In this document: positions 2,069 through 46,161 of the stretch, one piece after another | Position numbering within the stretch: the stretch's first letter is position 1 | Layout of the letters: each line of letters opens with the position of its first letter | From: Hemiscyllium ocellatum | Taxonomy: Eukaryota | DNA length: 64,000 bases | NCBI RefSeq assembly: GCF_020745735.1 | Contig: NC_083402.1 | Span: forward strand, 8,074,004-8,138,003 | Direction of reading: 5' to 3' | Notes under the pieces: generated by a model | The model's database searches: none | What the model was told of the DNA's origin: nothing | What the model saw: only the letters and a program-made list of their open reading frames with translations | Made by a program: the position numbers and the translations under genes

Positions 2069-2416
2069 CATGTACCTGCAACCGAGTCTCTTTCTGGATC
2101 AGATACTGATAATCCGGTTCTGATCTGTATTCCACCAGACACAGGTAAGTGTGATTGTCCCTCACACTCAGCTGGTTTATCCTGGTCGAGGCGTTTCCCT
2201 CCTCTGGGTTCCCGATGAGCTCGTATCGATTTCCACCGTGTCCAGTTCTCCAAGTTCCCTGTGATTGGGCTGTAAATGTAACGATGTGTTGGTAGGGCTC
2301 CTTCCTCATCCAGGTAACAGTGGTCAGGGTAGGGTAGTACCAGCGACTGAAGATACAGGGTAAAGTAACTGAATCTCCCTCTGTCCCACTCACCACTGGG
2401 ACATTTCCCTGAGCAG
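2069..2416 (-). CDS. V-set Ig exon V2a, Siglec-like, Arg replaced by Leu
   Basis: Paralog of V2b (19 of 348 nt differ). Acceptor TTTCCTCAG|, donor CATG|GTAAGA, open frame, YLCLVEY. Confidence 0.9.
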
Positions 2417-3352
2417 CTGAGGAAAGGACAAACATCAGAATGGATGAGGTCAGTGTGCAGAAGTTTTAATTTCAATATGTTCTATTCCTTTCAACTTCAC
2501 AATAAAATGAACAATTAAAGACCCCACTCACATCTCTAACAGGTCTGTCCTAGACATTCCCCAACAAGAGTCACCCTGATCAAAATATCTCCTCGCCACT
2601 CACTTTGAAAACCTTGATTACAAGATACTTCCATGATGTGGGGGTGCCAGTGTTGCACTGAGGTGGACAAAGTCAGAAGTCACACTGCACCAGGACTTCA
2701 CCTGATTCAGGAGCAGTGCTCTGAACCTTGTTATTTCAAATAAACCTGTTGGACTATAACCTGGTGCCGTGTGACCGCTGAAGGTACTTCCAGATCGGAT
2801 CCATTGAACTCTCCTGAATTCATTCATGCAGAACCCTCCGCCCGATGCTCAATATTAATATTCTTTAAACAAGGTCAAGGATTTTACAGCCTTCCCCCTC
2901 ACTCTGTTGCTCAACCACCTTCAAAGTATTGATCACACACTGTGTGAAGGAGAACCCCCTGTTGTAACCATTCACCAGCTCCAATCTGTGACCTTTGAAA
3001 TGAGCACAGGTTAATTTAAACTCAGAGTCCAGATTACATTTTCCTACACTGAGTAAAATATTTGGGTGCAGGAGGAGGGGGATAACCAGCCATGTGGCTC
3101 TTTGCTGCATGAACTTAAAAGAGGAGCTATGGGATGAAATGTTTCCCCATTCTTATTTAAATTGGTAATCTGTTATTTTGTAATTGTTCCCCTGTTTGAC
3201 TTCTGTTCACAAGAGCAAATATCCTCTCAGAATCTGCATTGTCAAGCTCCTCAGGATCTTGAGGAAGGGTCACTCTGCCTGAAACATTAACTCTGATTTC
3301 TCTCCACAGGTGCTGCCAGACCTGCTGAGCTTTTCCAACAGTTTCCATTTTT

Positions 3353-5611
3353 AAGACCATAAGACCATAAGACATAGGAGTGGACGTAAGGCCATTCGGC
3401 CCATCGAGTCCACTCCGCCATTCAATCATGGCTGATTGGCATTTCAACTCCACTTACCAGCGTTCTCCCCGTAGCCCTTAATTCTTCAAGACAACAAGAA
3501 TCTATCAATCTCGGCCTTGAAGACATTTAGCGTCCCGGCCTCCACTGCACTCCGTGGCAATGAATTCCACAGGCCCACCACCCTCTGGCTGAAGAAATGT
3601 CTCCGCATTTCTGTTCTGAATTGACCCCCTCTAATTCTAAGGCTGTGTCCACGTGTCCTAGTCTCCTCACCTAACGGAAACAATTTCCTAGCGTCCACAT
3701 TTTCCAAGCCATGTATTATCTTGTACGTCTCTATTAAGTCTCCCCTCAATCTTCTAAACTCCAACGAATACAATCCCAGTATCCTCAGCCGTTCCTCATA
3801 TGTTAGACCTGCCATTCCAGGGATCATCCGTGTGAATCTCCGCTGGACACGTTCCAGTGCCAGTATGTCCTTCCTGAGGTGTGGGGACCAAAACTGGACA
3901 CAGTACTCCAAATGGGTCCTAACCAGTGCTTTATAGAGTCTCAGTAGCACATCTCTGCTTTTATATTCCAACCCTCTTGAGGTAAGAGACAACATTGCAT
4001 TTGCTTTCTTAATCACGGACTCAACTTGCATGTTTACCTTTAGAGAATCCTCGACTAGCACTCCCAGATCCCTTTGTGCTTTGGCTTTACTAATTTTCTC
4101 ACCATTTAGAAAGTAGTCGATGCTTTTATTCTTTTTGCCAAAGTGCAAGACCTTGCACTTGCTCACGTTAAATTCCATCAGCCATTTCCTGGACCACTCT
4201 CCCAACCTGTCTAGATCCTTCTGTAGCCTCCCCACTTCCTCAGTATTACCTGCCTGTCCACCTAACTTCGTATCATCGGCAAACTTCGCTAGAATGCCCC
4301 CAGTCCCCTCATCCAAATCATTAATATATAATGCGAATAGCTGTGGCCCCAACACCGAACCCTGCAGGACACCACTCGTCACCGGCTGCCATTCTGAAAA
4401 AGAACCTTTTATTCCAACTCTCTGCCTTCTGTTAGACAGCCAATCCTCAATCCATCCCAGCAGCTCACCTCGAACACCATGGGCCCTCACCTTGCTCAGC
4501 AGCCTTCCGTGTGGCACCTTATCAAAGGCCTTTTGAAAGTCTAGATAGACCACATCCACTGGGTTTCCCTGGTCTAACCTACTTGTTACCTCTTCAAAAA
4601 ATTCCAACAGGTTTGTCAGGCATGACCTCCCCTTACTAAATCCATGTTGACTTGTTCTAATCAGACTCTGCTCTTCCAAGAATTTAGAAACCTCATCCTT
4701 AATGATGGATTCTAGAATTTTACCAACAACCGAGGTTAAACTGATTGGCCTATAATTTTCCATCTTTTGCCTTGATCCTTTCTTGAACAAGGGTGTTACA
4801 ACAGCCATCTTCCAATCATCCGGGACCTTTCCTGACTCCAGTGACTCTTGAAAGATCTCAACCAATGCCTCTGTTATTTCCTCAGCCACCTCTCTCAGAA
4901 CTCTAGGGTGTATCCCATCGGGGCCAGGAGATTTATCAATTTTAAGACTTTTTAACTTTTCTAGCACTATCTCTTTCGTAATGGCAACCATACTCAACTC
5001 AGCCCTGTGACTCCCTTTAATTTTTGGGATATGACTCATGTCTTCCACTGTAAAAACTAACGCAAAGTACTTGTTAAGTTCTCCTGCTATTTCCTTATCT
5101 CCCATCACTAGGCTTCCTGCATCAGTTTGAAGTGGCCCAATGTCTACTTTTGCCTGTCGTTTGTTTCTTATGTACTGAAAGAAACTTTTACTATCATTTC
5201 TAATATTACTGGCTAGCCTACCTTCATATTTGATCCTCTCATTTCTTATAACACTCTTTGTTATCCTCTGTTTGCTTTTGTATCCTTCCCAATCTTCCGA
5301 TTTCCCACTGTTCTTAGCCACTTTATAGGATCTCCCTTTTTCTTTAATACATTTCCTGACTTCCTTTGTCAGCCATGGTTGTCTAATCCTTCCCCGGATA
5401 ATCTTTCTTTTCTTGGGGATGAACCTCTGTATAGTGTCCTCAATTATACCTACAACTCCTGCCATTTTTGCTCTACTGTCTTCCCGGTTAGCCTCTGCTT
5501 CCAGTCTATTTTTGTCAGTTCCTCTCTCATGCCCTCATAATTACCTTTATTTAACTGTAACACTATTACATCCGATTTTGCCTTCTCTCTTTCAAACTCC
5601 AGACTGAACTC
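3353..5611 (-). mobile_element. Young 5'-truncated CR1 LINE (ORF2 RT), present only in unit A
   Basis: 659-aa stop-free RT ORF 3486-5465 (YRPISLTS, QHGF, VYLDFQKAFDKVPH, GSVLGP, FADD), one upstream 1-nt frameshift, (TCTTATGG)n 3' tail, TTTT target duplication. The empty site is present in unit B at ~31785. Confidence 0.95.
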
Positions 5612-5869
5612 TTTTGTTTCTGACTTGCAGCATCTGCAGTTTTTTGTTTGCATTTTCCTCAGGATGTTCGCTGTTTCATTAATTTCTACTTTTGTTTTAT
5701 TTGGTCATGGGTGTCACTGGCCCAGATGATGTGCATTTATTGTCCATCCTGATTGCCCAGGAGAAGCTGCCTTCTTCAACTGCTGCAGCCCTGAGGTGTC
5801 GGGGTTATCCAGAGTAATTTAAGGGATTGAGTTTCAGGACTTTGACCCAGCAACAGTGAAGGAATGCCA

Positions 5870-6180
5870 GTAGAGTACAAATAGACTCAGACTACTCTGC
5901 ATTGACCAAGGCCCCAATAACAGTGAGAACAGTCCCAGCCCTGTCAACCCTGCAAAGGCCTCCTCAGTGACATCTAGGAGCTAGTGCACAGATGGGTCGA
6001 CTAACAGCCTCACATGGTCAAACTCACAGAACCATAACTTACAATATCACAGACACCACGATCACTGTCCCTGGACACTGCCTGACCCAGCATCAGGACA
6101 GACGCAGCAGAGGTGGAGGCATAGTGGTATACCGTCAGGAGGGAGTTGCCCAGGGACTCCCCAATATGAAGTTCCCAAGT
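5870..6180 (+). mobile_element. Non-LTR LINE APE endonuclease fragment (copy at ~32040-32340)
   Basis: DTTITVPG....HQDRRSRGGGIVVY motif. Confidence 0.7.
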
Positions 6181-6719
6181 TAAAGACTACATTGTAAGCC
6201 CATTGAAGTTCAATCTGTCACCTCACAATCCACATTAACACCCCCCCACACCAACATTCCCGTCAGGGTGGGAGATCAATAAAGAGACATGTGATTTTGC
6301 TGCATGCAATACCAGGCGAAAGTGAGGGCTGCAGATGCTGGAGATCAGAGTCAAGATTAGAGTGGTTCTGGAAAAGCACAGTAGGTCAGGCAGTATCCAA
6401 GAGCAGGAAAATCACCTTTTCGGGCAGGAGCCCTTCATCAGCCACATTCCTGATTAAGGGCTCCTGCCCGAAACGTTGATTTTCCTGCTCCTCAGATGCT
6501 GCCTGACCTGCTGTGCTTTTCCAGCACCACTCTAAACTTGACTGTATACAACACTACGCAAACTGAAATGTGTGAGGCCAACACCCAGATCCCCAGGATT
6601 ACTTGCTCATCAAACAACAGAAACAGCACACAACAGAGCCAGCCCATAACCAATGGATCGGATGGCTCTGCAGTCCTGCTATAGACAGTCCTGAATGGTG
6701 GGGGACAATTGCTGCACCA

Positions 6720-7840
6720 GTTGTTCCAGTACAGAAAGCGCTTGATGTTGTCTACATGGACTTCAGTCAAGCCTTTGACAAGTTCCCTCACTGCAGACTG
6801 GTAAAAATGTGAAGTCACATGGTATCGGGGTGAGCTGGAAAGGTGGACACCGAACTGACTTAGTCATAGGAGACAAAGGGTAACAATGGAATGGAGGGTT
6901 GTTCCATAGGGATCAGTGCTGGGACATCTGCTGTTCATGGCCTATCCAATGATTTGGAGGAAAACATGTCTGGTCGAATTTGAAATTTTGCAGGCGATGC
7001 AAAGATTGGTGGAGTTAAGCATAGTGAGAAGGATTGTCAGAAGATTCAGCAGGATACAGATCAGTTCGATAGCAGATGGAGTTTAATCCAGACAAATGTG
7101 ACTGATGTATTTTGGAATGTCAAGTGCAGGTGGAAATTAAACACTGAATAGCAGAACCCTGAGGAGGATTAATATGCAGAGGGATCTGGGTGTGCAGGTC
7201 TCCAGCTCACTGGAGGTGACAACGCAGACAGATAAGGGAGTGAAAAAGGCCCACAGCATCATTGCCTTCATTGGGAGGAGCATTGAGTATAACGACAGAC
7301 AAAGTTATGCTGCAGCTTTAAAGAGCTTTAGTTCGGCCACACTTGGAATATTAGGTGCAGTTTTAGTCACCACACTACCAGAAGGATATGGATGCTTTGG
7401 AGAGAGTACAGAAATGGTTTACCAGGATATTGTCATGAATGGGGGATTTTAGCTGTGAAGAACGGGTGGATAGACTGGGTTTGTTTTCACTGGAACACAG
7501 GAGGTTGAGGGGCGACCTAATAGAAGTTTATAAGATTGTGAATGGCAGAGATAAAGTAGAATATATGAGGCTTTTCCTCAGAGTAAAGGGGTCAATTACT
7601 AGAGGACATGGGTTGAAGATATGGGGCTGGGGTTTGGGAGTGTGGTGCTGGTGCTATTAAGAGATGTACAAGGCAGGTTTCTCACACAAAGGGTGGGTGA
7701 GTGGCTGGAACGCACTGCCAGTGGAGGTGGTGGAAGCAGACACTATAGCAGCATTCCAGAAGCACCTGGATGAATACATGAATAGGAAAGGATGCTGATC
7801 CTGTAAGTGAAGACAGTTTTAGTATGGAAAGGCAAAATGT
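6720..7840 (+). mobile_element. Degenerate CR1 RT/3' end (truncated copy at ~32715-33070)
   Basis: LDVVYMDFSQAFDKFPH, DLGVQV, RRLRGDLIEVYKI. Confidence 0.85.
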
Positions 7841-8459
7841 GTCAGCCCTGGTTTGGGGGATGGAAGGGCATGTTCCTGTGCTGTGTTGTTATTTGTTCTT
7901 GATCTAATTACAACACTGACATCTACCCAACAATGCCCAGGTATACCCTATCCACAAAAAGCAATGTGGGTCTGACCAGGCCAATTAAACTGATGGAAGG
8001 TGTCAGTGACTGCCATTAACATCAAGGCTGTATTTGAGCGAGTGTAGCAAGAAGGAACCTGAGCCAGTGGGAAGCCGAGGGGAGAAACCTCCATGGGTTT
8101 CAGTCAGACCTGGCACAGAGGAAGATGGTTCATACAATCCTTTCATTGTGGAAGCAGGCCATTTGGCCCTACAAGTCCATACCAACCCTCTGAAGAGTGA
8201 CCCACCCAGGCCCATTCCCCAACCCGAATCTCTTACTCGACATTTACCCTGAACTGATACACCTAACCTGTATATCCATGAACACTATGAGCAATTTAGC
8301 ATGACTAATTCACCTGACCTTTACATCTTTGGATTGTGAGAGAACTCCAGAGTACCCATAGGAAACCCACACAGACACAGGGAGAATGTGTAAACTCCAC
8401 ACAGACTGTTACCTCAGACTGGAATCAAACCCAGATTGTTGTGGTTGTTGGAGGAGAAA

Positions 8460-10370
8460 GTGAGGACTGCAGATGCTGGAGATCAGAGCTGAAAATGTGT
8501 TGCTGGAAAAGCGCAGCAGGTCAGGCAGCATCCAAGGAGCAGGAGAATCGATGTTTCGGGCATGAGCCCTTCTTCAGGAATGAGGAAAGTGTGTCCAGCA
8601 GGCTAAGATAAAAGGTAGGGAGGAGGGACTTGGGGGAGGGGCGTTTGAAGTGCGATAGGTGGAAGGAAGTCAAGGTGAGGGTGATAGGCCGGAGTTGGGG
8701 TGAGGGCCGAGAGGTCAGGAAGAAGTTTGCAGGTTAGGTAGGTGGTGCTGAGTTCGAGGGATTTGACTGAGACAAGGTGGAGGGAGGGGAAATTAGGAAA
8801 CTGGAGAAATCTGCGTTCATCCCTTGTGGTTGGAGGGTTCCTAGGCGGAAGATGAGGCGCTCTTCCTCCAGCTGTCGTGTTGCTATGGTCTGGCGATGGA
8901 GGAGTCCTAGGACCTGCATGTCCTTGGTGGAGTGGGAGGGAGAGTTGAAGTGTTGAGCCACGGGGTGGTTGGTTTGGTTGGTCCGGGTGCCCCAGAGGTG
9001 TTCTCTGAAACGTTCTGCAAGTAGGCGGCCTGTCTCCCCAATATAGAGGAGGCCACATCGGGTGCAGCGGATGCAGTAAATAATGTGTGTGGAGGTGCAG
9101 GTGAATTTGAGGCAGATATGGAAGGATCCCTTGGGGTCTTGGAGAGAAGTAAGGGGGGAGGTGTGGGCGCAAATTTTGCATTTCTTGCAGTTGCAGGAGA
9201 AGGTGCCGGGAGTGGAGGTTGGGTTGATGGGGGGTGTGGACCTGATGAGGGAGTGGTCTTTTTGGAATGCTGATAGGGGAGGAGAGGGAAATATATCCCT
9301 GGTGGTGGGGTAAGTTTGGAAGTGGCGGAAATGACGACGGATGATACGATGTATATGGAGGTTGGTGGGGTGGAAGGTGAGGACCAGTGGGGTTCTGTCC
9401 TGTCACGATTGGAGGGACGGGGCTCAAGGGCGGAGGAGCAGGAAGTGGAGGAGATGCAGAGGAGGGCATCGTCGATTATGTCTGGGGGTAAATTACGGAC
9501 TTTGAAGAAGGAGACCATCTAGGTTGTACGGTATTGGAACTGGTCCTCCTGGGAGCAGATGCGGCGGAGACAAAGAAATTGGGAGTATGGGATGGCGTTT
9601 TTACAGGGGGCAGAGTGGGAGGAGGTGTAGGCAAGGTAGCTGTGGAAATCGGTGGGTTTATAGTAAATGTCCGTGTTCATTCGGTTGCCCGAGATAGAAA
9701 TGGAAAGGTCTAGGAAGGGGAGGGAGGAGTCTGAGATGGTCAAGATAAAATTGAGGTCGGGCTGGAAGGTGTTAGTAAAGCCCATGAACTGTTCAACCTC
9801 CTCGTGGGAGCACGAGTCAGCACCGATACAGTCATCGACGTAGTGGAGGAAAAGGTGGGGTGTGGTGACAGTGTAGCTGCAGAAGATGGACTGTTCCACA
9901 TATCCTAAGAAGAGGCAGGCATAGCTGGGGCCCATGCGGGTGCCCATGGCTACTCCTTTGGTTTGGAGGAAGTGGGAGGATTGGAAAGAGACGTTGTTCA
10001 GGGTGAGGACCAGTTCAGTCAGTCAAAGGAGGGTGTCAGTGGAAGGGTACTGGTTGGTATGGAGGGAAATGAAGAAGCAGAGGGCTTTGAGTCCTTCGTG
10101 ATGGGGGATGGAGGAGTGCAGGGACTGGATGTCCATAGTGAAGATAAGGAATTGGGGACCGGGGAAGTAAAAATCTTGGAGGAGGTGGAGGGCGTCGGTG
10201 GTGTCCCAAACATAGGTCGGGAGTTCTTGGACTAAGGGGGACAGGACCATGGCGAGGTAAGGAGAGATGAGTTCTGTGGAAGCAGGAGCAGGCTGAGACA
10301 ATGGATCGGCCGGGGCAGTCAGGTTTGTGGATTTTGGGCAGGAGGTAGAAACGGGCGGTGTGGGGTTGTG
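8460..10370 (-). mobile_element. Penelope-like retroelement (RT plus GIY-YIG endonuclease), decayed
   Basis: MGTRMGPSYACLF..YVE, HYVDD, DIYYKPTD; IYCIRCTRCGLLYIGETG region; pLTR with hammerhead-like CTGAAGA..GAAAC. Confidence 0.9.
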
Positions 10371-11857
10371 GGACTATGATTGTGGTGGTTGGTCAGTCAT
10401 CTCAGTTCCAGAACATCCCTGCAGGAGTTCCTCAGGATAGAGTCCTTGGCCTAACCATCTCCTGCTGTATCATCAATGACTTTCCCTCCACTATATACAT
10501 GAGAACATCACCACCTACAAGCTTCCCTCCAATACACTCACCATCTTGATTTGGGAATATTTCATCATTACTTCAGTCTGACTGGGACAAACCCCTTGGA
10601 ATCCTTAAACAACCTTATCGGGAATGTCCCTGCAGCTGAGGGAATGCAGCAGATCAAGAAGGCAGCTCACCATTCCCTTCTCCAGGTCAATTAGGGATGG
10701 CCAATATAGGCTGACCGAGCATGTGACACCCACGTCCCCTTGAACAATGAAAAGATAACTATACTTCCCAGTCAGGATGGTCTGTATCTGATGCCATTTT
10801 TTACACTGAGGTTATAGAGGTCACTACTTTGGAAGGTGCTGGTGGAGGAAGTGTTGCTGCCTTGCTGCAGTGTATTTTCTTGTTATTTTTATTGTTACAA
10901 TACTGTTGGGGTGGGGGAGTTCCAGGATTTTGACCCAGTGACAGTGACAGGGCAGCAATATATTTTCCTGCACTCTTCCAGACAAGTGGGGAGTATTCCA
11001 TCACACTTCGAACTGCTCAATATGCTTTGGAGTCAGGTGTGTTAATTTACAGGATCTCCAGCCTGTGGCCTACTCTTGAAGTCACAATTCCATTTACACT
11101 CCTGGGCTCACTCCTTGTCCACAACAGAGTGAGTCATTCAGGGGGCAGTTAAGAGTCAACCTCATTACAGTGGGGTCGCATGTAGGTCAGACCATCAAGG
11201 ATACAGATTTCCCTCCCTAAAGAACATGAGTGAACCAGGTATTATTTTTGTCCGAGGTGTCTACATGGTCTTTATTAAACTGGCTTTTCAGTCTAGATTC
11301 CTTTCAAATTCTAATTTCACAATCTGCCATGGATTGGAAAGTATTCGCCAGGACATTAGCCTCTGCAGATTCCTTCTCCCCCCCCCCCCAATCCATCTAA
11401 TTTCTGCTCAGCCAATAGAAAGTGAAGATAGAAACAGTGAGATTTTCAGCCAATGCGAACTGAGGGTTCCCTCACTCTGAGACGTGCTCATCCAATGAGG
11501 GCTCAGAATTTATGGATCTCTTTTTCTCACCCAATGCCGATAGAGCAGGACTCTCATTGGGAAGGGGGTCTTGGAGCTTGAATCCTTGATGATGTTGTGT
11601 CTGTTCCCTGTCCCAAACAACTGAAGCCGGTCTGACCACAGCAAATGAGTGACTGTGGGAGGTTTCAGATTCGGAAATGGATTGGTCTGTAAATCCCAGC
11701 CAGGTCTCTCCCTCTCTCTCTCCTTCTCACTGCCTCCTGCCTGAGACCAACTGGAAGAGCCCAGGAGAAGAACCCAACCCGAGAGCTCCCGGACCTGGTG
11801 GAGCCTGTCCCCATTGAGCTGTCAGGGCAGTGACACCATCCGAACATTGTTCCTCAC

Positions 11858-12244
11858 CTTCCACTTCCAGGCGTGTTCCATACCATGATTGAAACTTGCC
11901 GATATTGAGCTCCACACGACACCGATAGGAACCAACATCCTCCCGGCTCAGTCCCTCCATCATAACTGAGACATCTTTGTTGCTGAGGTTCCCCACGAAT
12001 CTGAATCGATTCCCACCGTGCCGCTGTATCACATTCTCACACAGCTCACCCTGGGAATGATCTGGACCAGGATATGTACACTTAAAGATAAAAGCCCGTG
12101 TTTCCTTCTTGTACCATAAGATGGAGCCGGTGAGTGTGAGGTGAGTGTCAGGGTGGGTGAAGCTGCAGGGTAAGACAGCAGAGCCTCCTTCCTCAGCCCA
12201 CACTCCATCCGCGATTGTCATTGACCAACCATAAGCAGACAAAG
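11858..12244 (-). CDS. V-set Ig exon V1a, Siglec-15-like, essential Arg present
   Basis: Paralog of V1b (25 of 387 nt differ). Acceptor CCCCTCACAG|, donor GAAG|GTGAG, open frame, YRCRVEL motif, four Cys. Confidence 0.9.
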
Positions 12245-12744
12245 CTGTGAGGGGAGAGAGAGAGAGGATATGAACACAGCACAGACACCAAACAGTGAGG
12301 TAAAACACTGAATCTGTTGTATGATGAGAACATATATAACATTGTTCAGTCATGGTTTATAAACTAACCTGGGACAGTGTGGAATGAGCTACAGGCTGGA
12401 GCACAACAGAAGGTTTCAGGGGGTTTGTGGTTCGACTGTGGGTGTTTGTTGCTGTTGGTTGATGAGAGTTTTTGGTGCCTGAGAGTTTCCAGGAGACCCA
12501 GAGTGATCTGAAGAGCAGGACTCAGGGCCCTCCCTGCAGAACCTTTTCTATTTCCCATCACCTTCTACTCTAGTACCGAGCCAGCCTTCAGCAACCTGGC
12601 TCATTCATCAGGCGTAGCAGAGGGATGGGGTACACAGTGAAAGTATTGCAGAGGGTGAAGGTGATACACAGAGACATGAAGAAGGAGAACTAAAGTAAAA
12701 AAATAAATCAGTCATAATCCCAGAGAACTGCTGTCTCATTAGAG

Positions 12745-12912
12745 AGAGGTGACTGATGGTGATTTAATCTGAGGGCCACTCTGCCTCAGACAGTGACACG
12801 GTTGAGAACCTGAGGCCTTCATGGTCCCCACAGACAGTATGGGAATTAAACCCGCATTGTTGGCTTTACTCCACATCACAAACCAACTGTCCATCCAACC
12901 GAGCTAACTGAC
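12745..12912 (-). mobile_element. Second tRNA-derived SINE family (copies at ~1170-1335 and ~35240-35405)
   Basis: Minus-strand TCAGTTAGCTCGGTTGG...GGTT(T/C)AATTCCC head with shared GAAGG.C.CATG..CCTCTC tail. Confidence 0.65.
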
Positions 12913-13094
12913 CCAAGAAGACGATCCAAGGAAATCCAGAAGGCAGTGTGAATATCATCAAGGGAGGGCATAAGGGAGTGTGGCATGGCTGGATGGCATT
13001 TACTTGTGAGTAAGGCAGATGAGCTGAGGTTGTAGATTAACACATTGGTATGTGATTTAGTTGTTATTGCAGGGATGTAGTTGAGGGTGGGTAA

Positions 13095-15615: not shown

Positions 15616-15849
15616 CTTACAAGATTGACAGCACAATGTCCCGGGTAGAGAACCATCAGATGAGACATGTGGGGGAAGGGGAATGTAAAAGAGGAGGGGG
15701 TATTGCAACATTGACCAAGGAGTCAATTGCTGTAATAAGATGGATGATATCTTAGAATATTCTTCAAATGAGGCCACATGGTACAATGTAAAAACAAAAC
15801 CCCATCACCACCCTCTGTCTCCTACCATCACGTCAATTTTGTGTCCAAT

Positions 15850-17754: not shown

Positions 17755-17945
17755 ATTTACCCCTAACTAATTCACCTCACCTGCACATCTTTTGGATTGT
17801 ACGAGGAAACTGGAGCACTCAGAGGAAACCAACGCAGACACAGGGAGAATGTGCAAACATTGCATAGACAGTCGCCCAAGGTTGGAATTGAATGCAGGCC
17901 CCTGGTGCAGTGAGGCAGCAGTGCGAAACACTGAGCCAAAGTGTT
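17755..17945 (-). mobile_element. HE1-type SINE, degenerate (paralog ~40115-40290)
   Basis: Same body as the 38915 element. Confidence 0.8.
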
Positions 17946-33800: not shown

Positions 33801-34339
33801 ATTTCACAATCTGCCATGGATTGGAAAGTATTCCCCAGGACATTTGCCTCTGCAGAGTCCTTCTCCCCCCATCCATCTATTTTCTGCTCAGCCAATAGAA
33901 AATGAAGATAGAAACAGTGAGGTTTTCAGCCAATGCGAGCTGAGGGTTCCCTCACTTTGAGACGTGCTCATCCAATGAGGGCTCAGAATTTATGGATCTC
34001 TTTTTCTCACCCAATGCCAATAGAGCAGGACTGTCATTGGGAAGGGGGTCTTGGAGCTTGAATCCTTGATGATGTTGTGTCTGTTCCCTGCCCCAAAAAA
34101 CTGAAGCCGGTCTGACCACAGCAAATGAGTGACTGTGGGAGGTTTCAGAGTCGGAAATGGGTTGGTCTGTAAATCCCAGCCAGGTCTCTCTCTCTCTCTC
34201 TCTCCTTCTCACTGCCTCCTGCCTGAGACCAACTGGAAGAGCCCAGGAGAAGAACCCAACCCGAGAGCTCCTGGACCTGGTGGAGCCTGTCCCCATTGAG
34301 TTGTCAGGGCAGTGACACCATCCGAACATTGTTCCTCAC

Positions 34340-34726
34340 CTTCCACTTCCAGGCGTGTTCGATACCTTGTTTGCAAATTGCCGATATTGAGCTCCACTCG
34401 ACACCGATAGAAACCAGCATCCTCCCGGCTCAGTCCCTCCATCATTACTGAGGCATCTTTGTTGGTGAGACTCCCCACGAATCTGAATCGATTCCCACCA
34501 TCCCGCCGTCTCACATTCTCACACAGCTCACCCTGGGAATGGTCTGGACCAGGATATGTACACTTAAAGATAAAAGCCCGTGTTTCCTCCTTGTACCATA
34601 AGATGGAGCCGGTGAGTGTGAGGTGAGTGTCAGGGTGGGTGAAGCTGCAGGGTAAGACAGCGGAGCCTCCTTCCTCAGCCCACACTCCATCCGCGATTGT
34701 CATTGACCAACCATTAACAGACATCT
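34340..34726 (-). CDS. V-set Ig exon V1b, Siglec-15-like, essential Arg present
   Basis: Acceptor (CT)n CCCCTCACAG|, donor GAAG|GTGAG, 387 nt, phase 1-1, no stops. Motifs WSMT..AVLPCSFTHP..ILWY..FKC..ELCE..RFRFVG..YRCRVEL..TRLEVE resemble, from recall, Siglec-15 (WSMQ..AVLPCTFTHP..FRC..ELCQ..RFRLLGN..YFCRVEF). Orthology not established. Confidence 0.9.
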
Positions 34727-35574
34727 CTGTGAGGGGAGAGAAAGAGAGAGAGAGAGGATATGAGCACAGCACAGACACCAAACAGTGAGGAAAAACACTG
34801 AATCTGTTGTATGATGAGAAAATATATAACATTGTTCAGTCATGGTTTATAAACTAACCTGGGACAGTGTGGAATGAGCTTCAGGCTGGAGCACAACAGG
34901 AGGTTTCAGGGGGTTTGTGTTCGACTGTGGGTGTTTGTTGCTGTTGGTTGATGAGAGTTTTTGGTGCCTGAGAGTTTCCAGGAGACCCAGAGTGATCTGA
35001 AGAGCAGGACTCAGGGCCCTCCCTGCAGAACCTTTTCTATTTCCCATTACCTTCTACTCTATTACCGAGCCAGCCTTCAGCAACCTGGCTCATTCATCAG
35101 GCGTAGCAGAGGGATGGGGTACACAGTGAAAGTATTGCAGAGGGTGAAGGTGATACACAGAGACATGAAGAAGGAGAACTGAAGTAAAAAAATAAATAAG
35201 TCATAATTCCAGAAAACTGCTGTCTCATTAGAGAGAGGTGACTGATGGTGATTTAACCTGAGGGCCACTCTGCCTCAGACAAGGGGCGCGGTTGAGAAGC
35301 TGAGACCTTCATGGTCCCCACAGACAGTATGGGAATTAAACCCACATTGTTGGCATTACTCCACATCGCAAACCAACTGTCCAGCCAACCAAGCTAACTG
35401 ATCCAACAAGATGATCCAAGGAAATCCAGAAGGCAGTGTGAATATCATCAAGGGAGGTCATAAGGGAGTGTGGCATGGCTGGGTGGCATTTACTTGTGGG
35501 TAAGGCAGATGAGCTGATGGTGTAGATTAACACATTGGTATATGATTTAGTTGTTATTGCAAAGACAGATAAAA

Positions 35575-38305
35575 ACAAGGACTGAGGTAAAAACAAGGAC
35601 TGCAGATGCTGGAAACCAGAGTCGAGATTGCTGGAAAAGCACAGCAGGTTAGGCAATATCCGAGGAGCAGGAAAATCAATGTTTCGGGCAAAATCCCTTC
35701 ATCAGAAATAGCGGCAGGGTGCCTGCAGAGTGGAGAGACAAATGAGACGGGGTAGGGGTGGGGAAAAGTTAGCATTGAGTACAATAAGTGAATGGGGATG
35801 GGGAAGAAGGTGATAGGTCAGAGAGGAGGGTGGAGTGGAAGGCTTCTTTAGGGTAGGCAAGATTGACAGCAGAGGTGTCAATGTGTTGCTGGAAAAGCAC
35901 AGCAGGTCAGGCAGCATCCAAGGAGCAGGAGAATCGACGTTTTGGGCATGAGCCTTTCTTCAGGAATGAGGAGAGTGTGCCAAGCAGGTTAAGATAAAAA
36001 GTAGGGAGGGGGGATTGGGGGAGGGGTGTTGGAAGTGCGATAGGTGGAAGGAGGTTCAGGTGAGGGTGATAGGCCGTTGTGGGGGTGGGGACGGAGAGGT
36101 CAGGAAGAAGACTAAAGGTTAGGAAGGTGGTGCTGAGTGGTGCTGAGTTCGTGTGTTGGGACTGATATAAGGTGGGGGGAGGGGAAATGAGGAAACTGGA
36201 GAAATCTGAGTTTATCCCTTGTGGTTGGAGGGTTCCTAGGCGGAAGATGAGGCGCTCTTCCTCCAGCCGTCGTGTTGCTATGGTCTGGCGATGGAGGAGT
36301 CCAAGGACCTGCATGTCCTTGGTGGAGTGGAGGGGGAGTGGGAGTGTTGATCCATGGGGTGGTTGGGTAGGTTGGTCCGGGTGTCCCAGTGGTGTTCTCT
36401 GAAATGTACCGCAAGTCAGCGGCCTGTCTCCCCAATATAAAGGAGGCCACATCTGGTGCCGTGGATGCAGTAAATGATGTGTGTGGAGGTGCAGGTGAAT
36501 CTGTGGCAGATATGGAAGGATCCCTTGGGGACTTCGAGGGAGGTAAGGGGAGAGGTATGGGCGCAAGTTTTGCATTTCTTTCGTTTTCAGGGGAAGGTAT
36601 CGGGAGTGGAGGTTGGGTTGGTGGGGGATGTGGACCTAACAAGGGAGTAACGGAGGGAGTGGTCTTTTTGGAATGCTTATAGGGGAGAGGAGGGAAATAT
36701 ATCCCTTGTGGTGGGGTCCGTTTGGAGGTGTTGGAAATGATGACGGATGATATGATGTATATGGAGGTTGGTGGCGTGGTAAGTGTGGACCAGTAGGGTT
36801 CTGTCCTGGTCACGATTGGAGGGGCGAGGCTCAAGGGTGGAGGAGCAGGAAGTGGAGGAGATGCAGTGGAGGGCATCGTCGATCATGTCTGGGGGGAAGT
36901 TGCGGTCTTTGAAGAAGGAGGCCATCTGGGTTGTTCGGTATTGGAACTGGTCCTTCTGGGAGCAGATGTGGCGGAGACGAAGGAATTGGAAATATGGGAT
37001 GGCGTTTTTACAGGGGGCAGAGTGGGATGAGGTGTAGTCTAGGTAGCTGTGGGAATCGGCCGGTTTATAGTTAATGTCCGTGTTGATTCGGTCATCCAAG
37101 CTAGAAATGGAGAGGTCTAGGAAGGGGAGGGAGGAGTCTGAGATAGTCCAGATAAATTTGAGATCGGGATGGAAGGTGTTGGTAAAGTGGATGAACTTTT
37201 CAACCTTTCTCATGGGAGCACGAGGCAGCGCCGATACAGTCATCGATGTAGCGGAGGAAAAGGTGGGGGGTGGTGCCAGTGTAGTTGCGGAAGATGGACT
37301 GTTAAACATATCCTACGAAGAGGCAGGCATAGCTGGGGCCCATGCGGGTGCCCATGGCTACTCCTTTGGTTTGGAGGAAGTGGGAGGATTGGAAAGAGAC
37401 GTTGTTCAGAGTGAGGACCAGTTCAGTCAGTCAAAGGAGGATGTCAGTGGAAGGGTACTGGTTGGTACAGTGGGAAAGGAAGAAGCGGAGGGCTTTGAGT
37501 CCTTCATGATGGGGGATGGAGGTGTACAGGGACTGGACGTCCATGGTGAAGATAAGGTGTTGGGGACCGGGGAAGCGAACATCATGGACGAGGTGGAGGG
37601 CGTGGGTGGTTCTTGGACTAAGGGGGACAGGACCGTGTCAAGATATGCGGAGATGAGTTTGGTGGGGCAGGAGCAGGCTGAGACAATGGGTTGGCCGGGG
37701 CAGTCAGGTTTGTGTATTTTGGGCAGGAGATAGAAACGGGCAGTGCGGGGTTGTGGGACTATGAGGTTGGAAGCTTTGGACGGGTGAGAAGTTGGAGTGG
37801 GTGAGAGGGGTGGAGAGGTTGAGGCAGTTAATGTCGCGGTGGCAGTTGGCAATGAAGAGATCGAGGTCAGGAAAGAGGCCAGCACAGGGTGTCCAGGTGG
37901 ATGGGGTGTGTTGGAGGCGGAAGAAGGGGACGTCAGTGGGTAGGCGAGAATCCTGGTTGAAGAAGTAGGCGTGGAGGTGAAGGCGGTGGAAGAATTGTTC
38001 GATGTCTCGCCGCATGTTGAACTCGTTAATCCGAGAGCGTAGGGGAATGAAGGTGAGGCCTCTGCTGAGGATCGATCGTTCATCCTCAGAGAGGGGGAGG
38101 TCTGGAGGGATGGTGAAAACACGTCAGGGCTGGGAGCTAGGACCTGGTGTGGGGCTGGAACTGGGAGTGGGGGCGGGGTAAGGCGTGGGGACGGGAATCG
38201 GGGCGGAGACGGAGATCAGGGTAGGGGTGGGGTTCGGCGTGGGGGGCGGGGTTAGGCTTGCGAACGGAGATCGGCGTGGGGGCATCTGCAGTCCTCACTT
38301 TCTCC
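35575..38305 (-). mobile_element. Penelope-like element (paralogous insertion in unit B)
   Basis: RT and GIY-YIG fragments (TKDMQVLGLLHRQT..RRLEEERLIFRLGTLQP), two terminal pLTR-like segments. Confidence 0.88.
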
Positions 38306-38914
38306 AACAAGCTTGACAGCACAATGTCCCGGGTATAGAACCATCAGATGAGACATGTGGGGGAAGGGGAATGTAAAAGAGGAGGGGGTATTGCGACATT
38401 GATCAAGGAGTCAATTGCTGTAATAAGATGGATGATATCTTAGAATATTCTTCAAATGAGGCCACATGGTACAATGTAAAAACAAAACCCCATCACCACC
38501 CTCTGTCTCCTACCATCACGTCAATTTTGTTTCCAATTCATATTCTTCCCCTGAATCCCATGTGATCTGACTTTACTAACTGGTCTACCATGCGGAACCT
38601 TGTCAAAGGCTTTGCAAAATGACCAAGTCAATAACATCTCCCATCTTGCCCTCATCAATCTTTCTGGTTATATCATCAAAAAAGTTAATCAAGTTTGTGA
38701 GACATGATTTCCCCTGCACACAGCAGTGCTGACTATCCCTTATCCCTGGTGTTGGGTGAGGTTTTTAAACTTTGTCCACCCCAGTCCAACACCGGCACCT
38801 CCACATTATATTCCTTAACAGTCCTAACTTCTTCACATGCCTGTAAATCCTATTTCTCAGAACCTCCTCCAAGAACCTATCCACCAGTGATGTCAGACTC
38901 ACAGGGTTATAGTT

Positions 38915-39226
38915 TTTTAGATTAGACTTACAGTGTGGAAACAGGCCCTTCAGCCCAACAAGTCCACACCGACCCGCCGAAGCGAAACCCACCCATACCC
39001 CTACATTACCCCTTACCTAACACTACGGGCAATTTAGCATGGCCAATTCACCTGACCCGCACATCTTTGGACTGTGGGAGGAAACCGGAGCACCCGGAGG
39101 AAACCCACGCAGACACGGGGAGAACGTGCAAACTCCACACAGTCAGTCGCCTGAGTCGGGAATTGAACCCGGGTCTTCAGGCGCTGTGAGGCAGCAGTGC
39201 TAACCACTGTGCCACCGTGCCGCACC
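38915..39226 (-). mobile_element. Full-length HE1-type tRNA-derived SINE, present only in unit B
   Basis: A box TGGCACAGTGG, B box GGTTCAATTCC, CR1-derived 3' tail, TAGTT duplication at 38910-14 and 39227-31. Empty site at ~16220 in unit A. Confidence 0.92.
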
Positions 39227-42200
39227 TAGTTCCCAGGCATCTCCTTGCAGCCTTTCTGCAATAAAGGCATAATGTTAGACAACGTCCAGTCCTCCAGCAC
39301 CTTACCTTTGGATGCAGATGATGCAAATATCTCTGCTAGAGGCCCCATAATTTCTTCCCTAATGTGCCATAATGCCCTGGGATACACATGACCATGTCCT
39401 GATGATTAATCACCTTTATGTTTTCAGGAACTCCAGCATTTCCTCTTCTGAAATGTAGGCTGTTTTCAAGCCATCAATATTTATTTTCCCAAGCTCCATG
39501 TCTTAAAGAGTGACTTAAAAGGGGGAAAGAGAGTTGGAGAGGTTTGGGCAGGAATTCTCACAATCTTGGAGATTGAAAGTTAGGCACCAGTGATCTTAAT
39601 ATTACAGTCTGGTGAAACCACCACCAGTCATCTCTTGCTAATGAGAGATTGGCCCGATGCCCCCTGGGACTATGGTGAGTTTACATTTACAATAAGGGAT
39701 ATGGAGGGGCCAGATTTGGAAATATTGTGAGTATATGAAGATGACAGACCCAATGCTGTGGAAGAATTTGAACCTGAGGAGGATAATCTTTCATTTTATG
39801 TCTTTTTCAATTCACGAGCAGTTCTGGGCACCACACCTTGGGAAGGATATTCTGTACCGGGCCACCAATCAGCTCACACTACTCTGATGTGTGTACAAGC
39901 AGGCACCACAAGCAGGTTGATACAAAGGTGCCAGGATGGACGTCAGGTTATGTATGAACTTCCTGTAATAGATCACCAGCCCCTGGAACGACCCAAGCTG
40001 TGGTACTGATGTGGAAATTAGGGTCACCTCTGCCTGCCCTCTTCCAATGGGTGTTACCCAGTCTTATTGACTCTGTCGTTTAAGTAGGACACTCAGGGTG
40101 CCTGGATTCTATATTTACCCCTAACTAATTCACCTCACCTGCACATCTTTTGGATTGTGGGAGGAAACTGGAGCACTCAGAGGAAACCAAAGCAGACACA
40201 GGGAGAATGTGCAAACATTGCATAGACAGTCGCCCAAGGCTGGAATTGAATGCAGGCCCCTGGTGCAGTGAGGCAGCAGTGCGAAACACTGAGCCAAAGT
40301 GTCGCTCTAAACCTTTCTGATTCATGTCCCTGTACAAATTTCCTATAAATGTTGTAACTGTACCTGCATCTAGCATTTTTCTTCTGGCAGTCCATTTCAC
40401 ATACAAACCCCCCTCTGTGTGAATACTTGCCCATCATGTCCCTCTTCATTCTTTCTCCACTCACCTTAAAAATATGCCCCTTGCTTTGAACTCCCCCCAC
40501 TCTGAGACAAAGACCTTTGTTATTCACTGTCTGTGTTCTCCTCACGATGTTATTAACCTCGGGGATGATCACCTTGATGGGATTGCTCTATCTGCCCTCA
40601 ATAGACAGGTGGAAATTGAGGAACAAAAATGTCAAGAGATCTCAGCTCTATGTAAGAATAATAGGGTTGTAATAAAAGGCAATTTTAACTTTCCAGATAG
40701 AGACTGGCACTGCCATAGTGTTTGGTGCTTGGACAAGTGAGGAAATTGTTAAATGTGTTCAAGAAAATTTTCTGTCTCAATCTGTAGCTGTCCCTATCAG
40801 AGAAGGAGCAAAATGTGACATTCTCTTGGAAAGTAAGGCAAGCGACTGAAACGTTTGGGAGCAGTGATCATCATTTTGTTAGTTTTAGATTCGTTATGAA
40901 AAAGTATAGGCATTGTAAAGTAGTATATAATTAGAGTCAGGCAAAATTTGATGGCATGGGACAGGAACTTTCAAACTTGATTGGAGTAAACTGTTCACAG
41001 GTAAAGGGACGACTGGCAATAAGAGTTTGCAAAACTGAGATAATGAGAGTTCAGAGACATGATGTTCCTGTTACAGTGAAGAGTAAGCTGGTCGGAGTCT
41101 GGGATAATGGATGAACAAAGATATTGAGGCTATGCTCAAGAATAATAAGGAGTCTTTTATTAGGTATAGAAAACTGGGATCAAGCGAATCTCGTGAAGAA
41201 TATCATGCGTGTGTAGTGATTGTAACAAGGTCAGCCAGGTGGGCCTCACAGAATTTGAATACCCTAATTGGTGCAGGTAATCTGGTCCAATCAGGGAGTC
41301 CTGGCTGACAGAGAAGAACAGGAATGCTAAATATCCTGTTCACTCTGAGGGAGCTGGATCAATGCCAAGGACTCTCCACATGTAAATATGGGTTGACCTG
41401 GTGATGAAATACAAGCCTTTTAGTGGAATTATTTCAGTGACAACAGGGGTAAGATTAATAATGTAACCATGCAAAAGTGCCTACTCGCTTCAAACAAGCA
41501 GTACAACTGGCTTTACCAATGGAAAATGCAGCAAGTGGAGCAGATGAGAAATAGGATATTCCCCTGGAAGTGGGCACCCGCACCAGACCGACTGAGCTGA
41601 GGGAACCACCACCTGAGTGAAGGCAATTGCACAGCCTCACTCAGGACATATCCTGAATAGAGGGACTCCAGGTCAGCCCAGAGCAAAACCCCAAAACAAA
41701 GCCAAGCTCCAACCAAATAGTGACAAATTTCTCCAGGATCCAGGCTGGCACAGCATTGTAATTGCTGTAGGAATCAGGACTCGAGACAGTAAAAGAGTCT
41801 CATTCGACCTAAACTGAGTCAAAGAACTCATCAGTCAGTGTCCAGGAAAGTCCATCTAAATCTGGTGTAGAATAATTAATTTGTTTAACAACACCTAAAT
41901 CAGAACCAATCAAAATTGGAGTCTGGTTAAATGATGACCTATTCTGGTTGAGGTCAATACCAGAATGGCCGTTGCAGTGATCATACAACCAGTCTTTAAC
42001 AAAATTTGCCCTGGACTCCAACCCTTAGGTTTGTACAAGAGCTCAGCGAGATTGAGAACCTCATACCGGGAAACCTTTCCAAATTAAGGATACAACTTCG
42101 GTTCCAGTCTCTTATGAGAAGCAGCTGGTTCAGTGATCACTGATTGTAGTAAAGGGTTTGGACCCGAGCTTGATCAGGTGAGGTTGGTTGACAAAGAGTC

Positions 42201-44453
42201 ACCTTGCTTCATCAACATTTTTGAATAGAAAATGGCTGCCTGAATGAATACTCAATGAGTATTTATATGGTTAACCATTTGCTTAAAATCTCCACAAAGA
42301 TGAACCAACTCATTGGGTTTCATAACTGGTACGATAGGATCAAAAAACAGGAAATGTGGAGGACCCTGAAACTATGAACCATAAATACAATAGTCAGCAC
42401 CAAATCACCAAGGGATTCAGAAAAAGCTTCTCTGCAGGAAGTGGTTAGGATGTGGAACCTGCTCATACACCAAGTGGTTGACACAGTGACCATTGTTGTA
42501 CTGAAGGGGAAGCTTGATTGACACTTGAGGGAGGAAGCAACAGAGGGAAGTGCTGTCAAAGTGAGAGAAAGAAGGGTGGGGGGAGAACTTGAGTCTGGCT
42601 GTTGAAGTAACAACATGAAGATCTGAAAGCCCCTTTCCTAACCGTCCATTGACAGCCAGTGAAATGAGAGAGATAATGAGGTCCTTTGGCATTGGATTTA
42701 ATATTAAGAAAGCAGTCACATCCTTAACTAACTTGGTCGAAAAATAAACGAAAATGGAATGGGCTACAGAATGTTGCCAGACAGTCATTGCAAAACTGAA
42801 AGTAATTTTAACAAATAAATGTGTAATAACTGCACCGAACTTTAATAAAGCATTTCAATTAGCAGGAGATGTTTGTGATTTGGGGATTGGAGCAGTTCTC
42901 CTACAGGACAACGAGGCTGGAATGGAGAAACTTGTGGCTTATTTTTCAAAAAAGCTGGAATCAACATCAGAAAACCGACTTGACGATAGAAAAGGAAGTT
43001 AGCAGCTTTTCAACACTTTTTCTCCATGTTGAGTATATAATCTAATGAGACTGTCTCTTTTACTGATGGTAATCCACTGACATTTGGAGATGGAGTTTAG
43101 ATCTACAGCTGGAGAAGTGTGAGTGGACTGGAGGAAAGCTCATGTGACACCTTGATTTAAAAATTGAGCAAGGGATAAACCAGGTAGCTCCAGGCCAGTG
43201 AGTCTGAGCTCAGTGGTGGGGAATCCATTGGAAGCAATTTAAAGGGACAGAATTAATCTACACTTGAGGAGGCAGGGATTAATCAGAAACAGACAGCATG
43301 GCTCTGTTAAGGCGAGGGAGGCAGAAGATGGGAAATTATCTGCTGTTAGTCTGACCTCAGTTGTTTGTAAGATTTTAGAGAACATTACTAAGAATGAGAT
43401 TGCAGAGAACTTGGAAGTGCAGGATAAAATACAGCTGAGTCAGTATGGCTTCATCAAAGGCAGGTCATGCCTGAAATAAATCTGTTAGAAATCTTTGAGG
43501 AGGAAACAGGCAAGTTAGATAAAAAAGAACAAAGTTGGTCATTAATGAGAACATGACCGACTTGGATTTCCAGATGATCTTTGACAAGGTGTTTCAGTGG
43601 AAGCTGCTAAATAAGATAAAAGCCCATGGTGTTAGGGATTGGCGTGGTGTGACAATACTCAGACTTTCAGAGGTATATTTTGTCCTGGTATTTATTTTCC
43701 ATGAAAAGAGGTTGAGATAGAGGTGAAAAAAAGTCTGTTTCAAAACATTAAAGTAAACAGCTTGTGAGGCTTTGGGTGTTTTTTTTACAAGTTGAAACAA
43801 TAGAAGCACTCTGAACGAGTGGGGTTAAGCTCCTACATAACAAGGATTTCAGTTTAACTTTGAGAAGCTGCTGGGGTTTGGAAGCTGCTATACATTGCTT
43901 CCTGAAGGCAAATGGAATATTATCCTTCATTGTAAGAGGGATGGAGTTTAAAAAGATGGAGGTTATGCTGCAGCTGTATAGGGGGCTGGTGAGACCACAC
44001 CTGCAGTATTGTCTCCTTAATTCCGAAAGGATGCATTGGGACTGGAGATAGTGCAGGGGAGGTTCACTTGGTTAATTCCAGAATTGAGGGGCTTGGCTTA
44101 TGAGGGAAGATTGAGTCGGCTGAGACTACATTCATTGGGATTTAGAAGAGTGATGGGGGAATATTACAAAAATATGTAAAATTATGAAGGAAATGAATAA
44201 GGTAGAAGCAGGGACGTTGTTTCCACTGGTGGGTGAAACTAGAACTAGGGGGCATCAGCCTTTTGTTATAAAGCCTCAAATTATCTTGAGAATGTGACTT
44301 AAATACAGTTCTGGGTAATACACATTAATGAATCAAAACCAGCAAATCCATTCTAAAAGATGAAAGACTGGATAATCAAGGTTTGTTCAATGTATCGTTG
44401 TATCACTGTAATCTATTGACAGAAATTCTGTGTCTTATGGTCCTGTTTCACAC

Positions 44454-44488
44454 CACCTGATGAAGGAGCAGCGCTCCGAAAGCTAGTG
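44454..44488 (+). ncRNA. Minimal type I hammerhead ribozyme motif in a Penelope pLTR
   Basis: CAC-CTGATGA-A-GGAGC-AGC-GCTCC-GAA-AGCT-A-GTG: stem I CAC/GTG, stem II GGAGC/GCTCC, palindromic AGCT for stem III. The paralog at 22684-22718 has one stem II mismatch. Confidence 0.7.
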
Positions 44489-46097
44489 CTTCCAAATAAA
44501 CCTGTTGGACTATAACCTGGTGTTGTGTGATTTTTAACTTTGTCCACCCCAGTCCAACACCAGCTCCTCCAAATCTTGTAAATGAACTCTGTTTTATTTA
44601 AAACTAAATGTTTTGACCAGCCAATTCTCTCCTGCAATATCCACTTTACACCTGTTTAAAACAACGAGCAAAGTTAAGGTCTGGGCTCCCTTCTTAAAGG
44701 GTTTGAGGGATCTGGCCTGGTCCATAACAGAATGGGGACTCTGCAGGATTTGTTGTTTAGTTGCAAACTGGGATTAGAGCTGTTGAACTTGAAGGCAGCG
44801 AATGGTAAGTGTTAGTGTCTGTTGTTCTGGATGTTGGTTTTGGTTGGTGTTGCTTGGTGTAGTCAGGGCTCTTTCAGTCAGCAAAAATTTTCTGGGGCTG
44901 GAGGAAGTGACCTTGGGGGTTTTACAAAAAGGTGGTTAAAGCCAAGCTGTGGGAATGAGCAAACAAGCTGGAGTTGGAGCTGCCTCCTTCCGTGAGGAAA
45001 GGACAGATACTTACAGCAGGAGCTCAACATTTACATTTGTTGGAAACTCCTTCAGAATCTTTAGAGAGGCTAAAGTTCAGGTGAAAATGAAGCAGCTTGG
45101 GTTAGAGGCAAAAGGAAAAAACCCAAGGACAACCGAACCTTGTTAAAGGAGCAGCTCCTTCACAAAAGGAATTTCAGGTTATGGTCAGCAAGTGGGTAAG
45201 GACAGCGGAGTCCATGGAAAGGTCACCCATGGTCTTATTGGATGGTGGGGCAGGCTCAATGGGAAAACAGCTTCAAGGTAAGAAATAAAAGGTGAGAAGA
45301 GAGTTGAGGAGAGATACGTTTTCATACAGAGGGATTTAAGAGTTTGGCACTCACTGTCTGAAAGAGTGTTAGAGTTAGAAACGTGAGTAACATTTAACCA
45401 GTATTTTGGGATTTAGTAGACTTCCCATTTGCCTCTTCAGTAGCCTGCATCTCTGCTGTCTTACTTCTTTTTGATATTTTAAACTTCTGTCCAATTGACT
45501 TCCACCTCCCACCTCTACCCATCCCCCATTAATTAGTTTAAAATCCTCAAAACAGTTGGTAAAAAAGGCACAAAGATCAAGAGCTGTATTCTGGGGGAGG
45601 TCTCGTCAGATTTTTGCTAACTCACACACAAACGATGGTCCAAATGACCTCTTTCTATGCATTAAATGTCCAAGAGTCCGTGAATCGGTAATGAAACCTG
45701 AAAGTAATGAATCTTCACATGAGGAATAGTTAATTGTCACTGGCCGACAGTAATTAACACTCATCATATTGACAGAAGAGCTTTGAGGCAGAAACAGACA
45801 AGATGGAACTTTCTACACTGAGTTTAGTTTGTATCTACCAGAGAAAGGTTGTCACTGCACATCATTCAGGAAATCTCAATGGTCAACCAACTGCATGGTT
45901 TAGTTACAGCAAGTGGAACATTTTGACTTTCTGTGTTCTGTATTTGTAGTATTATTTGTAAGAAATTGAGGCATACACTTTTGTCTCATCATTGTCACTT
46001 CTCAATCAGTTCTGTCCCAGTATCTCTCTGAAACCTGGGTGTGCCTGCAGTGTTCTGTATCTCCCCTCACTCTCTGGAAGTGTTAGAAAGTACTTAC

Positions 46098-46161
46098 TGT
46101 AAGCCTGCACTGAGACTGACAGGAGGACTGCAGAAAGACAAACGTAGAGGGACTTCATCAT
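46098..46161 (-). CDS. Signal-peptide (leader) exon of a Siglec-15-like Ig-superfamily receptor gene
   Basis: Minus strand reads ATG ATG AAG TCC CTC TAC GTT TGT CTT TCT GCA GTC CTC CTG TCA GTC TCA GTG CAG GCT TAC A|GTAAGT = MMKSLYVCLSAVLLSVSVQAY. It has a basic n-region, hydrophobic core and V-Q-A cleavage motif, a consensus donor, and phase 1, matching all four downstream V acceptors. Too short for the ORF track. Confidence 0.85.

Follow-up and report, generated by a model that had tools for sequence, protein, structure and literature searches.

Tandem V1-V2 cassettes behind a single leader exon in a putative Siglec-15-type receptor gene of Hemiscyllium ocellatum

Siglecs have one N-terminal V-set domain followed by C2 domains, the notable exception being Siglec-12 (Siglec-XII), in which exon duplication has produced two N-terminal V-sets while the C2 domains are kept. 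The usual description of Siglec-15 is of one conserved activating receptor with a V-C2 ectodomain, whose transmembrane (TM) lysine couples to DAP12. Here we analyze a 64,000-nt stretch of DNA from the shark Hemiscyllium ocellatum (NC_083402.1, hereafter the window), which carries on its minus strand one leader exon (L) and four exons for V-set domains arranged as two V1-V2 pairs. We consider it probable, at about 60%, that the window holds the 5' two-thirds of one gene, most likely LOC132829852, encoding a type I receptor with three such pairs, a TM segment and a tail with immunoreceptor tyrosine-based inhibitory motifs (ITIMs), or L-(V1-V2)x3-TM-ITIM. Coordinates are window positions unless a locus is named, and the exons are as follows, in the order in which the gene is read.

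46161-46098, minus strand: leader (signal-peptide) exon, 64 nt, with its ATG at 46161, a phase-1 donor (GTAAGT) and a 21-residue hydrophobic signal peptide
34726-34340, minus strand: V1b exon, 387 nt, Siglec-15-type V-set, four Cys, Arg of the YRCRVEL motif present
30840-30493, minus strand: V2b exon, 348 nt, V-set, two Cys, with Leu where V1b has the Arg (YLCLVEY)
12244-11858, minus strand: V1a exon, 387 nt, 86.7% amino acid identity to V1b, Arg present, with an N-L-S sequon absent from V1b
2416-2069, minus strand: V2a exon, 348 nt, 91.3% amino acid identity to V2b

Each V exon is preceded by a long polypyrimidine tract and AG and is bounded at its 3' end by GTGAGG or GTAAGA. With phase 1 at every junction, the leader and four V exons join over 1534 nt with zero stops, just as an earlier interpretation made from the DNA letters (the sequence-only reading) had described. 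The resulting 511-residue join, which is well beyond what chance would produce, is 100% identical to residues 1-511 of two H. ocellatum RefSeq proteins, XP_060690378.1 (P0169; LOC132821685, 600 aa) and XP_060703220.1 (P0257; LOC132829852, 871 aa), with the leader identical to residues 1-21 of each. Both are automatic predictions named 'uncharacterized protein', and they disagree on what comes after V2a. All four V exons match the Pfam V-set (E 1e-12 to 1e-17), and an AlphaFold model of V1b-V2b (pLDDT 88, pTM 0.85) predicts two V-type Ig folds. In the window, no second leader was found by blastn (word size 7) or tblastn with the leader, no TM or cytoplasmic exon by tblastn with 16 family members carrying a TM segment and tail, and no Ig exon, C2 included, besides the four V exons. 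The open reading frames (ORFs) in 1-2068 are similar in appearance to transposable elements (TEs) or low-complexity sequence.

To place the two domain types, we compared them with proteins of known structure. In a phmmer search of PDB, the best match of V1 is human Siglec-15 (7ZOZ) at E 4e-13, seven orders of magnitude ahead of the next (5e-6), and the two align through an N-terminal WSM, an LPC-FTHP B strand, an extra Cys pair and an F-strand CRVE with its Arg in register. V1a, V1b and V1c (the V1 of a third pair, discussed below) all carry YRCRVEL, aligned to FCRVEF of human Siglec-15; V2 has Leu there, and the conserved F-strand Arg varies across the wider family. V2 matches the V domains of CD276 (4e-9), the Siglec-15 V domain (1e-8), TIM and pIgR (~2e-7). 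In the shark protein P0191, V1 aligns to the mammalian Siglec-15 V domain with 40% identity (E 1e-25) and V2 aligns to it with 32% identity (E 9e-11), and no part of P0191 aligned to the C2 domain in this pairwise comparison. Since the Siglec-15 V domain is matched by V1 and V2 alike and its C2 by no part of the protein, V2 is best read, at the level of sequence, as an old copy of this V type that lacks the Arg and sits where C2 would be. A Foldseek search with the V1b-V2b model returned JAML, scFv-like pairs and pIgR as top matches; at TM-scores of ~0.4, the likeness to these tandem-V proteins, and to CD33/Siglec-10, is one of domain type only.

The sequence-only reading had called the product a Siglec-15-like receptor. 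This stands for V1, by its E value and its retained Arg, and for its relatives, as the closest ones outside elasmobranchs are annotated as Siglec-15. It does not stand for the architecture: all four exons are V-set, the RefSeq models pass directly from V2 to the TM segment with no C2 domain, and the TM segments of XP_060703220.1 and XP_060690378.1 are uncharged and hence lack the lysine. On this comparison the predicted protein is neither a canonical Siglec nor a Siglec-15 orthologue, and "Siglec" would fit its V1 domain type only. Whereas Siglec-15 itself has a C2 domain and a DAP12-coupling lysine, the window gene has a second V-type domain instead, repeated V pairs, an uncharged TM segment and, in one model, an ITIM tail; a TM lysine in the PLG-K-L-LLV context of Siglec-15 is found in other elasmobranch members of the family. 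Siglec-12 offers a parallel for the extra V-sets, which arose there by intragenic duplication in an inhibitory Siglec and in which, as here, the Arg is not kept in every V. There, however, one V was added and C2 domains remain, whereas here V-sets make up the entire ectodomain and were duplicated in pairs. Ectodomains with several V-type domains, or with no other type, are also a feature of pIgR, CD300, skate MDIR and JAML, and the sequence-only reading had proposed that grouping of the V domains with a known multi-V family would count against a Siglec affinity. V1 is nearer Siglec-15 (4e-13) than pIgR (5e-6), and for V2 pIgR is a middling match, below CD276 and Siglec-15, so that a pIgR- or CD300-type nearest relative is not what we find.

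Self-alignment of the window yields two collinear blocks, A (1545-23402) and B (29969-45669), which are 93-96% identical and differ in their private insertions. The corresponding repeat units have boundaries that fall within introns.

23403..45669, minus strand: repeat unit B, reading 5' to 3' through a head (intron-1-like, ~11 kb), V1b, V2b and a tail (~6.5 kb, with reverse-transcriptase fragments); it starts ~430 bp downstream of the leader exon
1..23402, minus strand: repeat unit A, with a head, V1a, V2a and the start of a tail that extends ~7 kb past window position 1

Seen together with a paralogous locus, a complete unit consists of a head of ~11 kb, V1, V2 and a tail of ~9 kb, for 22-30 kb in total; unit A is longer than B owing to extra blocks at 3352-5612 and 7067-10588. 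The interval between V2b and V1a is the B tail followed by the A head and contains reverse-transcriptase fragments. It had been described as TE-filled and free of C2, TM, cytoplasmic and second leader exons, and our tblastn and blastn searches agree. The units also bear out the proposed origin by intragenic duplication; we suggest that the copies, or cassettes, were created by unequal crossing-over within introns. Both ends of every cassette exon are in phase 1, so the reading frame is kept whatever the number of complete cassettes spliced.

Comparison of the two cassettes shows how their exons have changed. The non-coding parts of A and B have diverged by 4.0% (470/11,661 sites), with 38 indel events. 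The exons have diverged by 6.0% (44/735 sites), above the flanks (Fisher p = 0.013), with 0 indels in 735 nt versus 2.4 expected from the flanks (P = 0.09) and a dN/dS of 0.75. In V1 most replacements fall at the N-terminus or in the C-C', C'' and F-G regions, and in V2 most are in the BC and FG loops; Cys residues and framework are unchanged. Although the statistics are modest, the pattern resembles diversification of loops, or patchy gene conversion, in exons that are otherwise maintained rather than decaying. The competing view is that one or both cassettes are an unused leftover of recent duplication, or an assembly artefact, and that their intact frames merely reflect youth. The duplication is indeed young by its flanks, the neutral probability of finding no indel is not negligible, dN/dS is as high as noted, a sister gene carries pseudo-exons and the region shows assembly redundancy (both described below). 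We nevertheless hold this view to be very improbable. The 4-6% differences between A and B and their private TE insertions occur in one gap-free stretch, so the two are not collapsed or duplicated haplotypes; stops and indels are absent and eight of eight splice sites are intact; the excess of exon change is in loops, with framework and Cys untouched; and cassette C, the third unit, is without a leader of its own.

That cassette differences are concentrated in the loops resembling complementarity-determining regions makes alternative cassette use a serious rival to a receptor bearing all V domains at once. Common mRNAs might carry one V1-V2 pair (L-B-TM, L-A-TM or L-C-TM) or varying subsets, which would place alternative ectodomains on one signalling tail. 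Every such subset is in frame, since the TM exon shares phase 1 with the exons of each cassette; two V domains are by a wide margin the most frequent arrangement among family members; and in RefSeq isoforms from Chiloscyllium punctatum and from a related H. ocellatum scaffold (L003, below) a single V or TM exon is skipped. However, the RefSeq models built on the window exons all use the complete set, models with three to six V domains exist for several paralogues and species, and no regulated-choice element was seen, although no search was aimed at one. On balance we find cassette choice conceivable but unlikely. An extension of it, which we regard as doubtful, is that three interchangeable, loop-diversified V1-V2 cassettes share a single leader and a single ITIM tail, and that their choice or combination by splicing would give a small repertoire of ectodomains differing in ligand specificity and length, with unequal crossing-over continuing to make new cassettes. 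If true, it would give sharks a means of diversifying receptors without rearrangement.

The reading that we prefer, a single long receptor with three cassettes, depends on what lies beyond window position 1. After residue 511, XP_060703220.1, which is on the same chromosome as the window, continues with V1c-V2c, a TM segment and a tail with ILYAEI. Its TM segment is uncharged and this motif fits the form (I/V/L/S)xYxx(I/V/L), as expected of an ITIM-bearing inhibitory IgSF receptor; the exons concerned are outside the window, and it is the RefSeq model that would link them to those within it. Its coding sequence spans 105,039 bp, which puts the stop at window position -58,878, as compared with a span of 58,265 bp for XP_060690378.1. 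By this span arithmetic the window most likely belongs to LOC132829852.

Further evidence comes from L003, the unplaced scaffold JAJGRY010000332.1 with LOC132809452, a near-copy of cassette C and the 3' exons in which the distance from the start of V1c to the end of the last XP_060703220.1 exon is 39,357 bp (9980 to 49336). The resulting V2a-V1c distance of ~21.5 kb is within ~0.5 kb of an A tail plus a C head (~21.1 kb), leaving no room between them for a set of TM and tail exons, and repeat comparison shows the head of a third unit after A's tail. All five LOC132809452 isoforms begin at a Met inside V1c, and the 20 kb upstream on L003 yielded no leader for cassette C. Cassette C therefore needs a distant upstream leader, consistent with a single long gene. 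A fuller tail is encoded on L003 (P0259), with VTYAAV and the ITIM-like CTYASI as well. The four-V receptor of the sequence-only reading thus holds as regards the four V exons present in the window, but the ectodomain is probably longer: four V domains are probably a lower bound, and with the third block beyond the window there are probably six.

In the arrangement that we propose, one promoter-proximal leader exon would be followed by tandem 22-30 kb cassettes, each with a head intron, V1, V2 and a tail. Cassettes B and A would be those in the window, and C, one TM exon and the ITIM cytoplasmic exons would lie 19-59 kb beyond position 1. Were all these exons joined in one mRNA and expressed, the Arg-bearing V1 would be a glycan-binding, Siglec-15-type lectin-like unit, as its sequence suggests, and the Arg-less V2 would stand in for the C2 spacer. 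Repeated V1-V2 pairs would add and extend binding sites for the presumed glycan ligand, such that cassette number sets valency or avidity and reach, and the ITIM tail would recruit SH2 phosphatases to give an inhibitory signal.

A different 3' end is offered by the 600-aa model, under which the protein would have exactly four V domains with the TM segment and tyrosine-less tail of XP_060690378.1, with no third cassette and no ITIM. This model is 100% identical to the window join over residues 1-511, and the same type of TM segment and tail is present in at least four other H. ocellatum models. It comes, however, from L001, the locus of LOC132821685, ~326 kb from the window. Window 1-50000 is 99.97% identical to L001:6162-56164, but identity is 94.5% at 50-53 kb and the sequences are unrelated beyond. 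Assignment of the window to LOC132821685 was rejected, as the two diverge upstream of ~50 kb. At L001, moreover, the contig ends 1.2 kb into a third-unit head at a 200-N gap (L001:64333-64532), and it is across this gap that the model joins V2a to its TM exon. The 13.7 kb after the gap (L001:64533-78265), which hold the TM and tail exons, are 99.76% identical to L002:46845-60555, the 3' end of the sister gene LOC132821675, whereas outside this piece L001 and L002 are 93-96% identical. Judging from this identity, the post-gap piece may be chimeric or mis-scaffolded, or very recently converted. The last exon of the model reads through a GT donor at which paralogues splice on to ITIM exons, and no ITIM exons were found within 10 kb downstream of its tail. 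We consider a four-V, 600-aa product of the window improbable. For annotation, it follows that two RefSeq genes share five exons and have different 3' ends, one of which spans an assembly gap and may be chimeric.

We note that ~50 kb containing the leader and both cassettes are thereby present twice on the same chromosome at 99.97%, with identity falling to 94.5% ~4 kb upstream of the leader. Either the segment was duplicated very recently or the assembly is redundant here.

Several observations weigh against the single long receptor. Placement in LOC132829852 rests on span arithmetic rather than on DNA read there. Near-identical copies and an assembly gap occur in the region, and cassette copy number may be misassembled. 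The same five exons have two different RefSeq 3' ends (600 aa and 871 aa), and predictors can chain any phase-1 V exons. A protein search for the V2b-V1a junction gave seven NCBI models and no ORFs from run assemblies, and shorter isoforms are equally possible given that the cassette and TM exons are all phase 1. Extra cassettes are also not always retained. In LOC132821675 (L002) an intact V1-V2 pair is followed by a frameshifted V1 pseudo-exon (L002:41157-41533), a frameshifted and truncated V2 pseudo-exon (L002:46011-46288) and then the TM exon, meaning that the distal pair has decayed. Finally, the A/B dN/dS is 0.75, and when dN/dS was taken per lineage by reference to cassette C and the sister gene, few changes were counted, too few to show constraint on each copy.

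An exhaustive HMMER search with V1b returned 259 proteins. The closest relatives are elasmobranch RefSeq models, mostly 'uncharacterized protein' and some named Siglec-15, Siglec-12, pIgR-like or JAML-like, and the nearest relatives outside this group are the annotated Siglec-15 proteins of lungfish, birds and mammals. In a domain census of the fetched proteins the commonest architecture by far is L-V1-V2-TM, which comes in three kinds. The first has an uncharged TM segment and a long tail with ITIMs (ILYAEI, VTYAAV). The second has a TM lysine within IPLG-K-L-LLVMW, a motif that recalls the TM segment of tetrapod Siglec-15, and a tail of 10-25 residues. The third has an uncharged TM segment and a 61-residue tail without tyrosine. 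Short-tailed members of the second kind are found in sharks and rays (P0188-P0191, P0197, P0198, P0210, P0212 and others); by their sequences they may be true activating, DAP12-type counterparts in a paired receptor family.

Models with three to six V domains are present in Hemiscyllium, Chiloscyllium, Stegostoma, Heptranchias and Narcine, and like the window gene they have repeated Siglec-15-type V domains behind a single leader. Examples are H. ocellatum LOC132821652 (654 aa), a 'pIgR-like' protein of Chiloscyllium punctatum (641-653 aa), Stegostoma tigrinum LOC132206012 and a four-V protein of Narcine bancroftii. The cow shark Heptranchias perlo has V1-V2-V2-V2 (P0174), and in the lungfish Protopterus annectens seven Siglec-15-type V domains precede C2 and TM (P0001). 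In a V1 phylogeny, V1b and V1a cluster together and with the V1 of LOC132821675, a two-V gene nearby (support 93/89), and not with positionally equivalent V1 domains of other multi-V genes. Amplification therefore looks to have been local and repeated, in independent events, or else the copies have been homogenised.

The sequence-only reading had left open that this receptor was undescribed. RefSeq already holds this very join, three- to six-V models from several sharks and a ray, and the seven-V lungfish model; the sequences are thus public as automatic predictions, and literature searches found no paper on an elasmobranch Siglec-15-type V1-V2 family. In sharks and rays the Siglec-15 V domain appears in a large, fast-evolving family with a second V in place of C2, with ITIM, TM-lysine and tyrosine-less kinds and with V pairs that have repeatedly been amplified to four or six domains. 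Should the long forms be expressed, nature would have provided in them a test of the gain of avidity or new specificities by lectin-type receptors through cassette amplification, and they would also show how paired activating and inhibitory families came about early in jawed vertebrates.

The tyrosine-less tail of the third kind is found in H. ocellatum P0169, P0274, P0177, P0003 and P0272 and is generated by reading past the donor used in ITIM-bearing paralogues. In the four tails read (P0169, P0274, P0003 and the L001 exon), the 61 residues end in T-S-S-V, similar to a PDZ-binding C-terminus of class I.

Two minor features of the window remain. The first is an open ORF in the V1a-V2a intron.

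3486-5465, minus strand: LINE reverse-transcriptase ORF, open, 659 aa, Pfam RVT_1 at E 1.6e-31

The block that holds it (3352-5612) is an insertion found in unit A and absent from B, L002 and L003. The element may be young and still able to code. The second, at 58674-58774 on the minus strand, is a 100-bp stretch that stands alone and matches, at 87-90% identity, the pyrimidine-rich end of the intron in front of V1 exons; it is not followed by a V exon. Lying ~12.5 kb upstream of the leader, it is probably the relic of another cassette.

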